Virus record (IMG/VR): IMGVR_UViG_3300028392_000029 | Coordinates: 124,001-188,000 of that record | Strand: one strand, 5' to 3' | Length of the DNA stretch: 64,000 bases | Made by a program: the position numbers and the translations under genes | The notes under the pieces: generated by a model | Seen by the model: only the letters and a program-made list of their open reading frames with translations | What the model was told of the DNA's origin: nothing | Databases searched by the model: none | Shown: piece by piece, positions 41,573 to 47,265 of the stretch | Position numbering within the stretch: the first letter of the stretch is position 1 | Layout of the letters: the number at the start of each line of letters is the position of its first letter

Positions 41573-42346
41573 TTATTTTCTTATTTTGTTGTTGTATTTC
41601 ACCACTTCTTCTACAACGGTTACAGGGGTATTTAGGTTTTTTGCATAATGTATGAAAGCATTTGTGTCTTTAGGAAAACACGCTCCGCCAAACCCAAACA
41701 ATCCATCGGATCCAGGCACGTTCATATGGCTTAATCCAATTCTAGTATCTGCAGAGACTAACTGTTTGACTAATTCATAGTCTGCACCGTTGGCCTGACA
41801 TACTTCATAAATTTGATTAAAAAACGCTACCTTTGTACTTAAAAAACTATTAATTGAATATTTGATCATACTAGCTTCCGTAATACTACACGGGAGAAAG
41901 AATTCGCATTTTTTAAGAACAGATGAAAATAAGTTTTCCCAGAAACTATTGAAATCTTCTCCGCCGATAATCATATATTCTTGATTTAAGAAATCTTCAT
42001 CAGCAGTTGCCGCACGTAGAAATTCTGGACTATAACAAATATGATGATTAGGATAATCGACTAATATTTGAGATAGCTGATCCGGGGGTATAGTTGACTT
42101 AATTAAAACTGGTAAATTATCCGGCGTATTTTCTAATACTGATCGTATCTGTGTGTCGTCACAACTACCGTTGGGCAAACTTGGTGTACCTACACATATG
42201 ATAACACCTTCTCCTGTTTTGTAATCAGATACACTACTAGTGTTGATCTTTGGATCAACAATGTGAATAGTATGCTCAGCCGCCAATGCTAGACCAACCG
42301 CCTTACCTACAAATCCATAACCTGCAATTATAATTTCTTTTTTCAT
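41573..42346 (-). CDS. ugd: UDP-glucose/GDP-mannose dehydrogenase family protein (short form)
   Basis: GYGFVG, ICVGTP, KSTIPP, SPEFLR, KYSIN, GFGGACFPKD; stops after the central domain. Confidence 0.85.
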   Translation of the reverse strand: MKKEIIIAGYGFVGKAVGLALAAEHTIHIVDPKINTSSVSDYKTGEGVIICVGTPSLPNGSCDDTQIRSVLENTPDNLPVLIKSTIPPDQLSQILVDYPNHHICYSPEFLRAATADEDFLNQEYMIIGGEDFNSFWENLFSSVLKKCEFFLPCSITEASMIKYSINSFLSTKVAFFNQIYEVCQANGADYELVKQLVSADTRIGLSHMNVPGSDGLFGFGGACFPKDTNAFIHYAKNLNTPVTVVEEVVKYNNKIRK

Positions 42347-42347
42347 A

Positions 42348-45017
42348 TTAGAACTCAAATAAACTGTTAAATGTGTTTTTTTCTTCTGTACTACGGACAT
42401 CCCATTTAAGTACACCGATAAGATTTTCTAGTTTTTTATCTATAATGGCTTGTTCCATTTCAGTATGGTTAAAAGGCAAATCCTTAAACCATTGCGGCAA
42501 TCTGAGCTCATCTACTGGATAAGCTACGCTTGTGAATCCCAAAGGATTGTCTTTAAGTTTGCAGACGATAACTTTTGCACCATCTGTAATAGCCATGCTA
42601 TATTTGTCATCAAACATACGTTTAAGTGTGTTCCAATTAATGCTTGCACGAACATGCCCGGGCATATTAGCCTTACCAGCCTTTACTTCCTTAGCCTGAT
42701 ATTCTGTAATGTTATTGGCACGTTTAGGACTACCTTTCTCCCAACCGGGACGAACTTTAAAACGTGTTCGGAATTCAGTGATGTGGGCTAGTACAGTATT
42801 TTCGTCAGCACCGGTTAGCACCAACTCAAGAACATCACTTAAAAAGTTTTGAATAAACTCAGGTGTATCACTACGCTTGAGATCCAGCCCCATGGCTTTG
42901 ATCTTGCCAGGCTTGCCATCTACGTCTGCACGTTTGCCTTCTTTGTCATAATACAACACTGCATAGCGTTTCTTAGTAATAAACAGACCTTTAATTGCAA
43001 CAATCTCACGACCAGCTTTGATAACTTCACCGCGTGACTTTGGCACATGGAATGTATCTAACATGAACTGTGGAAAGGTAGTATTAACTTCTTCACCAAT
43101 CTGGTCATATAGCTGAACAACACTTTCTTTAGTCCAGGGAATAACTTTTGAATTGATATCTTTTTGCAGAGTTTTATAAGCACTAAAATAGCACGAGTCT
43201 GTATCACCGTAAATAATAGCCTTGCCCCTGTAGTCATACTCGCCGGCCACAATCTCATTGACCTTGCCAGCCATGTGCTTGACAATTTGTCTGCCTGTCA
43301 GTGTGGTTGACTGCCCGATACGCTTGTCAAAGAATCTACAGCCACTATTAAGAATAGCACCATACAAACTGTTCAAGTTAATCTTCTTGACCAACTGACG
43401 TTTGTCCCAATATTCTTCTTCAATCTTGTTGCCTGCCTTGATAGCATCTTTTAGTTTGGCCTGCATCTCCTTACGTTCGGCATACCAACGTTTGAGCAAG
43501 CCGGGGATAATGCCTTCTGTTTCGTGTGTAAAGATAGTACCATTAGCACTTAACATCCACGGCTGATTGCTTTCAAATATAAGTCTATAGACTTCCGCGG
43601 CACTGAGCACATCACTATCACCGTTTTGCCAATCAATAGTAATGTCTGTGCCAATTTGTTGTTCCATTACGGCTGTATATTCTAGTGATCCGAAGATACC
43701 TTCCCATGCCGCCGCAAATGATTTACCTTTTCCAATTTGCGCTTCAATATAATCGTCAGTTAATGTCTGACGTAATTGTCCAACAATAGTTTCCGGACCC
43801 ATATTCAATGCACGAATGGCTGATGGGTAAAGACTATTAATATCTAGGGAACCAATCCAATCATGAATACCTTCTTTAGGGACAGCGACATACGCACCTG
43901 CGGCTCCTTCATTATCTTCTCGATCATCCATCTTAGTTCGATTGGGTACTTGGAATCCTCTTCGATGGGCTTCGTTGATAATTGCTTGCTCAGTTACAGC
44001 TACCGCACCCATTGTGGTCTGTAGCAACACAGTACACTCATGTGCCAGTGTGTTGGCAAGATCCATAAACTTTAGTTTCTTGTCTAGATCGTCAAGCAGT
44101 TTACAGTCGTTACGGTTGTACTCAATGAACGTTTTAAAGTCATTGTTGTATAATTGGTCGAGCGTACCTTCATATTGTGTTTTACGTTGACCTAGTTCAT
44201 ATTCCGCGATGGCGTCAAGTCTATAACTGTGGCGTTCTTCATACGTATACTTACGGTACAGCTCAAGATAGTCTAAGTGAACGCGACCAATGTAGTCATA
44301 GGTTACACTATCACGACCAAACTTTTCATATTCTCTGCGTTTAGGAAATTGGTCAAATAAACAAAAACGTCGGGTATCTTCTTTGCTTAGTGCTTTAGTA
44401 ACACGATTAGTTGTGTAGGGAATATCAAAACCTTCACTATTCCACCCACTTAGTACATCAGCATCTTTAATCAAATCAAGAAAAACATCTAGCATTTCTG
44501 CTTCTGTTTTATAAAGCATTGTGTTAGGGAAGTCTTTAACTTGCTCTAACGCTTCTTCCATGGTAATAGTCTTTGGAGGAACTGCTAGACATACCATGGT
44601 TTCCATCCACTGTAGGTAGACAGCAATCGCAGTAATTGGCATGAACGCATCGTCTGGACTTGCATAGCCACGCTCTGGATCAAAGTCTACCTCAATATCG
44701 AAAAACGCTACGTTTAGTTTAGGAGCATCTTGATTAATGTAGTTTTCGCTTAGGCAAACAAAGATGGGATTAATATCTGCTTCAAATAATTGCTTACCTG
44801 AATTAATTGCTTGTTCTTTGCGTAGTTCTTTTGTATTTTTACAGATAACCCTGTTAAGTGGGTCGCCGTAGATTGATTGATATTTGCCCTTGGGGTCTTT
44901 GTAGTAAAACGTGTGTTTGACAGGTATGTCACGGAACTCACGCTCACCTTTCTTATTGCGTTCGACAACTTTAATAACATCGTTATTACGGTCAAACCAT
45001 GCATCTACATAGCTCAT
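42348..45017 (-). CDS. Family B DNA polymerase (gp43-like)
   Basis: Exo DIEVD and GWNSEGFD; DINSLYPS; KINLNSLYG; YGDTDS; KKRYA. Confidence 0.97.
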   Translation of the reverse strand: MSYVDAWFDRNNDVIKVVERNKKGEREFRDIPVKHTFYYKDPKGKYQSIYGDPLNRVICKNTKELRKEQAINSGKQLFEADINPIFVCLSENYINQDAPKLNVAFFDIEVDFDPERGYASPDDAFMPITAIAVYLQWMETMVCLAVPPKTITMEEALEQVKDFPNTMLYKTEAEMLDVFLDLIKDADVLSGWNSEGFDIPYTTNRVTKALSKEDTRRFCLFDQFPKRREYEKFGRDSVTYDYIGRVHLDYLELYRKYTYEERHSYRLDAIAEYELGQRKTQYEGTLDQLYNNDFKTFIEYNRNDCKLLDDLDKKLKFMDLANTLAHECTVLLQTTMGAVAVTEQAIINEAHRRGFQVPNRTKMDDREDNEGAAGAYVAVPKEGIHDWIGSLDINSLYPSAIRALNMGPETIVGQLRQTLTDDYIEAQIGKGKSFAAAWEGIFGSLEYTAVMEQQIGTDITIDWQNGDSDVLSAAEVYRLIFESNQPWMLSANGTIFTHETEGIIPGLLKRWYAERKEMQAKLKDAIKAGNKIEEEYWDKRQLVKKINLNSLYGAILNSGCRFFDKRIGQSTTLTGRQIVKHMAGKVNEIVAGEYDYRGKAIIYGDTDSCYFSAYKTLQKDINSKVIPWTKESVVQLYDQIGEEVNTTFPQFMLDTFHVPKSRGEVIKAGREIVAIKGLFITKKRYAVLYYDKEGKRADVDGKPGKIKAMGLDLKRSDTPEFIQNFLSDVLELVLTGADENTVLAHITEFRTRFKVRPGWEKGSPKRANNITEYQAKEVKAGKANMPGHVRASINWNTLKRMFDDKYSMAITDGAKVIVCKLKDNPLGFTSVAYPVDELRLPQWFKDLPFNHTEMEQAIIDKKLENLIGVLKWDVRSTEEKNTFNSLFEF

Positions 45018-45029
45018 TAATTCTCCTTA

Positions 45030-45075
45030 TGTCATTTTAGGCTGACAAATACCTAGTGTGCGGTTTATGGCCCGC
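45030..45075 (-). promoter_or_regulatory. Twin-hairpin leader of the DNA polymerase gene (candidate translational operator)
   Basis: GCGG-GCCATAAA-CCGC and TGTCA-GCCTAAAA-TGACA, the latter 1 nt before AAGGAG. Confidence 0.55.
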
Positions 45076-45091
45076 CGACCCTCTATAGCAA

Positions 45092-45098
45092 TATTTAT
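45092..45098 (-). promoter_or_regulatory. T4-late-like promoter motif upstream of the polymerase
   Basis: GATAAATA at the dsbA-like stop. Confidence 0.45.
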
Positions 45099-45355
45099 CA
45101 GATACGCTTAGTGATATCCAAAATTGCTTCAATCTCTTCCCAATCTTCATTGTAAGCCGCCCAATCGCCTTTGTGTGCAATCTTGATAGCTTTGTTAATG
45201 ACACTTGGTTTGATCTGTAATTCTTCTGCTACTGCCTTAACTGTTTCTTTCAATCCTTCTTGCAAGTCTTCAACTTCGCGTAGTACTGTGCTACCTTCAC
45301 TAATCAAACGCTCGAGTTTTGCCTTTTCTTCTGCACCGTATGAACGACCACCCAT
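45098..45355 (-). CDS. T4 DsbA-like dsDNA-binding protein
   Basis: 85 aa helical protein (LKETVKAVAEELQIKPSVINKAIKIAHK...EEIEAILD) with the DsbA pattern. Confidence 0.6.
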   Translation of the reverse strand: MGGRSYGAEEKAKLERLISEGSTVLREVEDLQEGLKETVKAVAEELQIKPSVINKAIKIAHKGDWAAYNEDWEEIEAILDITKRI

Positions 45356-45380
45356 TGTAAATCTCCTAATGTATAAGCCT

Positions 45381-45409
45381 ATTATATACTAGTTATCCGG
45401 TAAATGCAA
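45381..45409 (-). promoter_or_regulatory. sigma70-type promoter of the dsbA-like/polymerase unit
   Basis: TTGCAT-17 nt-TATAAT. Confidence 0.7.
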
Positions 45410-45431
45410 CCACTAAGAAATTTTAGAGGTG

Positions 45432-45458
45432 AAAATGGCAGAACTAGTCTGCCATTTT
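45432..45458 (-). terminator. Intrinsic terminator (likely bidirectional)
   Basis: AAAATGGCAGA-ACTAG-TCTGCCATTTT inverted repeat right after the 45472 stop. Confidence 0.8.
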
Positions 45459-45471
45459 GTTGCATAACTAA

Positions 45472-47265
45472 TTACGGTGCTGGAGCCGGCGCCGCCTTTG
45501 GAAGTGAATCAATAGCAGTTTGTGCGGATTGTAATGCGGCGTTAATGCCGGCATCGTTGCCGTCATCTGGTAATTGAGCCATGATTTTTCTAATCTCGTC
45601 AACCATTGCTGTTTGTTCCGGTGTTGGTCCAACTGGCACTACAGGAGCTACTGGTTTGTTTGGATCTACTACTGGTTTATTTGGATCAACTGGTTTATTT
45701 GGATCAACTGGTTTATTTGGATCAACTGGTTTATTTGGATCAACTGATGGATCTGGACCTTGTCCTTTATTTGGAGTTAACGCAAGACCAGCGGCACCTC
45801 CTAATGCTGCCGCACCTAATGCAGTTTTAACTGGGTTCTTTGCAATTGCTGAACCTACGCCCATTCCTTTAAGTGCCGCATTTGAAGGAGCTCTTTCAGC
45901 GCCAGCTTTTGCCATTGCTTGCACCTGGGCAGGCGTATACTTTGCTACTTTGTTTGCTCCACGGCCAGTAGTTTGCGCCGCTAATTTGTCAGCTGACTTT
46001 TGAAAGGCAGCTTTGTCTACAGTATTAGCTAATCCTGGTTGGCCTTTCAACCCCTTCCAAGCCGCACTACCAAAGTCTGCTATATCACCAAAGATACCTT
46101 CATCTAGTGTTAATGGTTTGTTCTTTACACTTTCCCAGATGTGTTTTACTGTTGTAGTGTCTGTAACTAAGTCACCGTTGGTTCTATAAAAATTACCATC
46201 AGTGCCTAAGAAATATTCTTTGTCTAATGTTGACATAGCTTCTAACATTTCTAAACGATTGCGTAGACGAACAATAGACTCGGCAGCAGATTCTGCGGCA
46301 GGCATTGTGACTCCATATTGCTTCATAGCGGCTTGAGTCATCGGACCCATTTTGCCATCAGCTTTAATCTTAGCACCTTTCTTGATTAGTTCATTTTGTA
46401 CAGCAAATACTTTAGCATCTCCACCAGGTGGAACTGCAGGTTTACTATCAAACTCACCATGTTTGTAATCACGAGCTAAGTTGGCGGCATCTAATCCTAA
46501 TGATGCGGCAGTGCCAATTCCTGGAACTAAACTAGCTAGACCACTGGCACCAGCCATACCGGCACCTAACCAATCACCTTTCTTAGCGCGATTATACGCA
46601 TCGGCAGCACCGAATGCTAAACCAACACCAGGGATAGCTTTGCCTAACATTTTACCAACACCTTTAGCGCCAGCGTATGTTGCGCCACCGACGGCAGCTT
46701 GTTGTGCTAGGCTTGCTTCGCTTTCAGTTTGATAACCAAAACTCTCAATCAATCTACGCGAGTTAAAAGATTCCTTAACGGCTGCAGGAGTTTTTAATGA
46801 TGCTTGTAATTTTTGTACTAGATCTGCCAACTTAGTCATGTTGGCTTGATTTTGCTCGTTACTGTTTAGTGTAGCATTAGTTCTATCGCTTTGTGTTTGT
46901 ACATCCTTGTCGTACTTACCACCACTTACGCCAAACAGTCTACCAAGGAATGAACTCTTGTTTGCATTCTTAGGAACTAGACCTAAATTAGCTAATTTTT
47001 GGTCATCTTCTTTGCTAGCAGTAGTACTGATACGTGCTGTTGGCTGTCCGCCGTCGCTAGCCGGGTTTAATACAGCAGAAACATAGTTACCGCTTACTGG
47101 ATCATACAATCCTGGCAAGCCGTTTTTCTCAGCCATCTGTTGTAGTGTAAGTGAACGAGCTTGTTCATTACTAGCACCTTGTACGGCAGCTTCTACATCT
47201 CGCAATCTAATACCTTCGGATAGTTCGATTGCATCTAGTTTGTTCATTAATTCACGAATGTTCAT
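45472..47265 (-). CDS. Probable internal head/virion protein with peptidoglycan-binding-like segment and Pro-rich repeats
   Basis: Start moved to MNIRELM; VQNELIKKG...ADGKMGPMTQAAM is PGBD-like; DPNKPV repeats. Confidence 0.55.
   Translation of the reverse strand: MNIRELMNKLDAIELSEGIRLRDVEAAVQGASNEQARSLTLQQMAEKNGLPGLYDPVSGNYVSAVLNPASDGGQPTARISTTASKEDDQKLANLGLVPKNANKSSFLGRLFGVSGGKYDKDVQTQSDRTNATLNSNEQNQANMTKLADLVQKLQASLKTPAAVKESFNSRRLIESFGYQTESEASLAQQAAVGGATYAGAKGVGKMLGKAIPGVGLAFGAADAYNRAKKGDWLGAGMAGASGLASLVPGIGTAASLGLDAANLARDYKHGEFDSKPAVPPGGDAKVFAVQNELIKKGAKIKADGKMGPMTQAAMKQYGVTMPAAESAAESIVRLRNRLEMLEAMSTLDKEYFLGTDGNFYRTNGDLVTDTTTVKHIWESVKNKPLTLDEGIFGDIADFGSAAWKGLKGQPGLANTVDKAAFQKSADKLAAQTTGRGANKVAKYTPAQVQAMAKAGAERAPSNAALKGMGVGSAIAKNPVKTALGAAALGGAAGLALTPNKGQGPDPSVDPNKPVDPNKPVDPNKPVDPNKPVVDPNKPVAPVVPVGPTPEQTAMVDEIRKIMAQLPDDGNDAGINAALQSAQTAIDSLPKAAPAPAP
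45650..45742. repeat. 18-bp coding tandem repeat (DPNKPV)
   Basis: ACTGGTTTATTTGGATCA x4 perfect (45671-45742) plus one variant copy (45650-45667). Confidence 0.95.

Follow-up and report, generated by a model that had tools for sequence, protein, structure and literature searches.

Tandem pseudoknots in the leader of a family-B DNA polymerase gene of a lake phage

The window analyzed here is a 64,000-nt stretch covering bases 124001-188000 of a 223-kb IMG/VR virus record (IMGVR_UViG_3300028392_000029) that is about 60% complete, and its DNA is found in freshwater and lake metagenomes. On the minus strand, an 85-aa, weakly DsbA-like ORF (45098-45355; Pfam Phage_DsbA E = 5e-4, below the cut-off) ends with TGA at 45100-45098, and an 889-aa family-B DNA polymerase ORF (42348-45017; Pfam DNA_pol_B 1e-37, with an exonuclease domain) starts at AUG 45017-45015. 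The polymerase is at most 49% identical to that of any named phage, the nearest being Sinorhizobium phage Phosso (49%), Agrobacterium phage Atu_ph07 and the 121Q/Rak2-like jumbo phages, and it is 25% identical to T4 gp43 over 768 aa (E = 3e-54), being a full-length homologue of gp43. A megablast of the locus against named phages gave no match.

In the 80-nt gap between the two ORFs, the mRNA strand carries a promoter-like box GATAAATA (45099-45092) overlapping the TGA stop, an 11-nt spacer, GGU-CG, and hairpin 1, GCGG-GCCAUAAA-CCGC (45075-45060). These are followed by ACACUA (45059-45054), GGU-AUU, and hairpin 2, UGUCA-GCCUAAAA-UGACA (45047-45030), after which one U (45029), the Shine-Dalgarno sequence AAGGAG (45028-45023) and AAUUA lead to the AUG. 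The original prediction had described two hairpins with unrelated stems and near-identical 8-nt loops sharing GCC..AAA, the second stem ending 1 nt before AAGGAG, and this observation is confirmed, including the coordinates, stems, loops and the 1-nt distance.

The single sequence, however, is not beyond chance. The 106-nt leader folds no better than shuffles (z = -0.02), and hairpins with a GCCNNAAN loop and a stem of at least 4 bp occur 6 times in the 223-kb record against 6.8 +/- 2.4 in shuffles, so that the case rests on comparison with relatives. The alignment of polymerase leaders from related phages for stem covariation with loop conservation, which had been named in advance as a test, was performed on 80 IMG/VR loci with polymerases 76-100% identical. 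In these leaders the two loops, the GGUAUUUG between them and a GG[U/C] before hairpin 1 stay fixed, with the loop letters GCC and AA invariant, while the stems change in a compensatory way, and the ACACUA spacer between the modules varies in length and sequence. In an alignment of 67 unique leaders, 89.4% of cells pair against 72.2% in shuffles, the covariation score is 0.518 against 0.190 (0/500 shuffles reach it), and slid controls pair only 21-38%; RNAalifold independently returns the same two hairpins. In 100 sequences aligned to a covariance model of the element (R1), hairpin 2 pairs in 100% of cells, and its two middle pairs show CG/UA/AU/UG and AU/CG/GC types, while its outer pairs and closing A-U are nearly invariant. 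All four stem pairs of hairpin 1 show changes on both sides.

The element is specific to the polymerase leader. The model R1 scores 78 bits at this leader and no more than 13 bits elsewhere in the 223-kb record, where the element thus occurs once, and it hits all 80 polymerase-matched loci at 59-83 bits, including six in which no element had been seen next to the polymerase start codon. In five of these six, a 50-63-aa Cys-rich ORF (C-x2-C ... C-x3-C-x-C, no Pfam match) lies between the element and the polymerase gene, as at L058:2813-3004, L053:2831-3004, L059:1782-1934 and L074:2843-3004 (L with a number denoting the contigs of relatives), and the same insertion recurs in further contigs such as L099, L106, L107 and L123. 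The element stays at the start of this ORF, whose stop overlaps the polymerase ATG as ATGA, suggesting translational coupling. In the sixth, L015, a 790-nt insertion separates the element (L015:125-188) from the polymerase start (L015:976) and carries an opposite-strand 247-aa ORF (L015:204-947) with Pfam DUF723 (7e-9) and a weak treble-clef zinc-finger match; the polymerase gene has its own new AAAGGAG there, and the insertion is inferred to be mobile and homing-endonuclease-like. A scan of IMG/VR with only the linker-plus-hairpin-2 pattern, blind to the polymerase, returned at least 120 stretches, and of 77 of these, 76 lie directly upstream of a PolB homologue (68-100% identity) and the last sits on a contig that ends 130 nt downstream. 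The same pattern in one genome each of 185,579 prokaryote species gave 23 hits, none near a polymerase and 22 without a complementary stem, indicating chance matches. A search of 44900-45250 against Rfam 15, including the preQ1, SAM-II/V, guanidine and fluoride riboswitches, gave at E up to 10 only three chance-level matches, to eukaryotic or viral families and far below their gathering scores. The named relatives found by protein, Phosso, Atu_ph07, 121Q and XbC2, lack the element, as does T4.

The shared loop letters were found to be pseudoknot strands. Each hairpin is preceded, 1-4 nt upstream, by GGU (or GGC), which can pair with the first three loop letters GCC as G-C, G-C and U.G (or C-G). 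Module 1 (45080-45060) consists of S1a GGU (45080-45078), L1 CG (45077-45076), S2a GCGG (45075-45072), S1b GCC (45071-45069), L3 AUAAA (45068-45064) and S2b CCGC (45063-45060), and module 2 (45053-45030) of S1a GGU (45053-45051), L1 AUU (45050-45048), S2a UGUCA (45047-45043), S1b GCC (45042-45040), L3 UAAAA (45039-45035) and S2b UGACA (45034-45030). For module 2, a scan for leaders with GCU instead of GCC, leaving the upstream base free, found a more distant clade (polymerase 51-66% identical), in which all 18 polymerase-linked hits read AGUAUUUG rather than GGUAUUUG, with A upstream of every GCU loop; the converse scan for a non-G upstream base with GCC found only five chance hits, with neither polymerase nor stem, so that no polymerase-linked leader combines A, C or U at that position with GCC. 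On the 100-sequence alignment, this S1 pair (columns 49-66) is GC in 85 sequences, AU in 13, GU in 1, which is a misaligned row, and unpaired in none. For module 1, unique leaders of the main clade read GGU/GCC (81), GGC/GCC (33) and AGU/GCU (3), and the last three (L113, L160 and L197) each have GGY/GCC leaders among their nearest polymerase relatives and represent separate events. In the distant clade, module-1 S1 reads AGU/ACU, GGGU/ACCC, GAGU/ACUC, GAGU/ACUU, AGUC/GACU and GUC/GAC, always starting at the first loop base (66 of 5000 permutations reach the observed score), although the upstream module in the leaders of the two more distant clades (L259-L338 and L205-L229) is a different conserved hairpin, GAGUC-GCNC-ACNNNAC-GNGC-AUG, which may or may not also be a pseudoknot. 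Exceptions affect only the terminal U.G position, as L004 and L260 have UCC, and L266 has ACC opposite GGU, which pairs as U-A. Because automatic hairpin parsing mis-registered many module-1 stems, such as bulged GGCGAGG stems and the alternative AUGGU/GCCAU pairing, the counts relied on come from a loop-anchored parse (main clade), a hand-anchored parse (distant clade) and the column count on the alignment.

The pairing is therefore backed by compensatory G-C to A-U double changes in both modules, in at least four independent lineages, and by no contradicting combination. Each module comprises S1 (3-4 bp), L1 (1-4 nt), S2 (3-6 bp), no L2 and an A-rich L3 of 4-6 nt, which is an H-type pseudoknot, with L1 crossing S2 and L3 crossing S1 at lengths that appear sterically adequate on general grounds, although a three-base-pair S1 is marginal on its own. 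The invariant AA of the loops sits where such pseudoknots usually lay adenines into the groove of S1, an inferred contact. The U.G wobble in S1 of module 2, present in 99 of 99 sequences, would be an A.C mismatch on the other strand and marks the folded strand as the mRNA, and G.U cells also occur in the stems. Two alternative pairings were rejected: loop-loop kissing, because GCC cannot pair with GCC, and pairing of upstream triplet 1 with loop 2, because in L113, L160 and L197 it would create A.C mismatches, while pairing within the module is compensated.

Regarding its position in the transcript, the hexamer TAAATA (45092-45097 at this locus) is the most enriched upstream of ORFs in the 223-kb record (9-fold; before 43 of 197 ORFs), usually appearing as NATAAATA[C/U] 17-30 nt before the start codon, and is probably the T4-late-like promoter of this phage, as inferred from sequence alone. 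Before the polymerase gene it lies 74 nt upstream, and the extra length is the element, so that if transcription starts a few nucleotides after the box, as in T4, pseudoknot 1 would sit at the very 5′ end of the mRNA. Metatranscriptome contigs from four lake runs cover the region at a depth of 0-10 without begin or end pile-ups, and one 255-nt contig spans 44894-45148, although DNA carry-over cannot be excluded.

Regarding its link to translation, module 2 ends 0-4 nt before the Shine-Dalgarno sequence in the main and distant clades, with a GGAG-like box following hairpin 2 at this distance in most relatives and being weaker in the small-ORF lineages. An unbiased sample around the distant member L210 revealed a third, sister clade, in which the module next to the Shine-Dalgarno sequence is of the hairpin-1 type, reading GGY, L1, S2 and then [G/A/U]CCAYAAN. 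In 32 of the 43 unique leaders of that clade carrying it, the 3′ strand of S2 contains the GG of GGAG, overlapping GGAG by 2-3 nt, and in the other 11 the Shine-Dalgarno sequence begins 1-2 nt later, so that both module types can occupy the Shine-Dalgarno-proximal place. Ten of 53 unique leaders in this clade have no module, indicating that the element can be lost. Many relatives (L012-L020, L044-L052, L060-L078 and others) start the polymerase gene with UUG instead of AUG, a weak start that fits a gene kept at low translation.

Based on these findings, we propose that the roughly 60-nt stretch from about 45081 to 45023, between the T4-late-like box and the ribosome-binding site, is the 5′ leader of the polymerase mRNA and acts as a translational operator, in which a sequence-specific RNA-binding protein would hold or cap the pseudoknots and keep the 30S subunit off the adjacent ribosome-binding site. 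The most economical candidate is free polymerase not engaged on DNA, as in T4 and RB69 gp43, with the same proposed logic of polymerase homeostasis, and two like modules would give two binding sites and a steeper response. What the comparison establishes is the structure, its conservation, its restriction to polymerase leaders, its strand and its position, whereas control of translation, binding by a protein and the identity of that protein with the polymerase are inferred. That this is a conserved cis-acting structured RNA with pseudoknots is highly likely and that it controls translation initiation is probable, but the polymerase as effector, although the leading candidate, is a tentative assignment that falls somewhat short of even. 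The near-invariant loop, L1 and stem-end letters in module 2 point to sequence-specific recognition rather than structure alone, but these letters could equally serve a small ligand, another protein or the ribosome. The element is dispensable, as shown by its loss in the sister clade, its absence from named relatives and its separation from the polymerase gene in L015.

The precedent for this gene is the gene 43 operator, as the T4, RB69 and RB49 polymerases bind an upstream hairpin plus ribosome-binding-site sequence of their own mRNA, and AA/AC loop bases matter for binding (PMC3014915), although some T4-related polymerases do not autoregulate (PMC3014915). The original prediction, that the hairpins form an analogous, duplicated protein-binding operator like that of T4 gp43, is partly supported. 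The two hairpins do form a duplicated, conserved, polymerase-specific element of the mRNA leader against the Shine-Dalgarno sequence, the placement that a translational operator would need, and hairpin 2 has the same 5-bp stem and 8-nt loop (18 nt) as the T4 operator hairpin, while hairpin 1 is 4+8+4 nt here and has 4-6 bp in relatives. Not supported is that the shared loop letters are simply free for a protein to read, since GCC pairs with the upstream GGU, whereas there is no evidence that the T4 gene 43 operator forms a pseudoknot (PMC3014915). Sequence kinship was not found either: R1 scores 4.3 bits (E = 3.2) on the T4 leader, and while the T4 and RB69 hairpins share their top 10 bases, with a -UAAC- loop, or -UAAA- in RB49, the loops here read GCC-NN-AAR and only their A-rich 3′ half (AUAAA/NNAAA) resembles the T4-type loops. 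In addition, the hairpin ends 0-4 nt from the Shine-Dalgarno sequence here against 7 nt in T4, and T4 gp43 is a monomer with one hairpin site, so a duplicated site is not predicted by that model. The element is therefore an analogue and not a homologue of the T4 operator, with the analogy resting on position and hairpin geometry.

Other systems share part of this anatomy. The autoregulatory leader of T4/T2/RB69 gene 32 also has an H-type pseudoknot near the 5′ end of the mRNA of a translationally autoregulated phage replication gene (PMC3014915), but it has one pseudoknot followed by a long unstructured A+U-rich tract that gp32, the ssDNA-binding protein, coats cooperatively, whereas here two pseudoknots fill the leader up to 1 nt from the Shine-Dalgarno sequence and the gene is the polymerase. 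The E. coli rpsO (S15) operator contains a pseudoknot (PMC3014915), and thrS has two similar stem-loops, one next to the Shine-Dalgarno sequence, read by a dimeric repressor that is the product of the gene itself; the genes, sequences and organisms are unrelated, and the tRNA anticodon-arm mimicry of the thrS loops is not evident here. The preQ1-I riboswitch is a compact H-type pseudoknot with an A-rich third loop and Shine-Dalgarno involvement, and the guanidine-II (mini-ykkC) riboswitch has two like hairpins in tandem just upstream of a Shine-Dalgarno sequence, but no Rfam family matches, covariation supports pairing within each module and not between modules, and the element is confined to a phage polymerase gene.

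Among alternative explanations, a factor-independent structural leader, in which the pseudoknots alone set a low, constant initiation rate by crowding or half-burying the Shine-Dalgarno sequence and/or protect the mRNA 5′ end from decay, survives best, though it is unlikely. It is consistent with the position a few nucleotides after the inferred transcription start, the stem overlap with the Shine-Dalgarno sequence in the sister clade, the UUG starts and the loss of the element, but it does not explain why GGU/GCC, the AUU of L1, the AA of L3 and the outer pairs of stem 2 are almost invariant while neighbouring pairs vary freely, nor why the module is duplicated. Less likely is an operator for another phage or host RNA-binding protein that represses or enhances polymerase translation, such as a dedicated phage repressor or ribosomal protein S1. 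The arguments for sequence-specific recognition apply equally to it, two like modules suit a dimeric binder, and pseudoknots were reportedly selected as S1 ligands in SELEX experiments; however, with a single copy in the genome, a dedicated regulator would have a single target, which is less economical than autoregulation. A RegA-family search of the record, about 60% complete, gave no match, but the control genomes gave no signal either. The adjacent DsbA-like gene lies upstream in 109 of 150 loci, either adjacent or about 320 nt away, and also neighbours the polymerase gene in Phosso (L084, 2351-2608, annotated as a DNA-binding protein), which lacks the element, so it is not tied to it.

A riboswitch is slightly less likely still, although it is not excluded: each small pseudoknot, or the pair together, would be a new, very small, phage-confined RNA that ties polymerase synthesis to a nucleotide-related metabolite and folds to mask the Shine-Dalgarno sequence without any protein. 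The topology is that of small pseudoknot riboswitches, with an A-rich third loop along the first helix and a second helix reaching into the Shine-Dalgarno sequence, letters at the helix junction are invariant, and tandem arrangement occurs in some riboswitches; but there is no Rfam match, each module is only about 24 nt with no L2, smaller than the smallest known aptamer (preQ1-I, about 34 nt), and restriction to one phage gene and to no cellular genome in the prokaryote scan is unusual for a metabolite sensor. A DNA-level signal (sigma-70 promoter, terminator of the upstream gene, origin or other protein site on DNA) or chance resemblance is effectively excluded, because TTGTCA-17-GAGAAT at 45048-45020 is among promoter-like matches occurring at the shuffle rate (2 found against 1.8 expected), no terminator-like site was found in 44700-45500, where hairpin 1, although it follows a stop codon, is followed by ACACUAGG, the strict covariation of stem positions and of loop with upstream triplet has no meaning for a promoter, the invariant U.G wobble is strand-specific, and conservation across more than 200 contigs excludes chance.

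Autogenous translational control of a DNA polymerase has been shown only for T4, RB69 and RB49, and it is stated to be unclear how far it extends and that no polymerase-RNA complex structure exists (PMC3014915). Here, a distantly related polymerase from a large group of uncultivated freshwater jumbo phages carries a different and much better constrained leader RNA, supported by more than 200 natural sequence variants. If the polymerase binds it, RNA binding would be a widespread and possibly old property of this polymerase family, and the natural variation would give a ready-made map of the RNA determinants and a compact, rigid RNA for structural work; if not, the element is a new phage regulatory RNA with another effector. 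Either way it is a new RNA motif, for what is inferred to be a known type of control, that annotation pipelines miss and whose covariance model finds polymerase gene starts in viromes, and no description of it was found in the literature searched, which was incomplete.

Module 2 seems to be the core unit, since in L121 (95-157) module 1 is replaced by a terminator-like hairpin with a U run (GUGGUUGA...UCAACCAC UUUUUUU) while the linker and module 2 are intact, and in L210 module 1 is degenerate. Just after the polymerase gene, the ORF at 41573-42415 (minus strand) matches UDP-glucose/GDP-mannose dehydrogenase domains (central domain 2.6e-23), and as listed from its GUG start it overlaps the polymerase 3′ end by 68 nt, so that its true start is probably further downstream.
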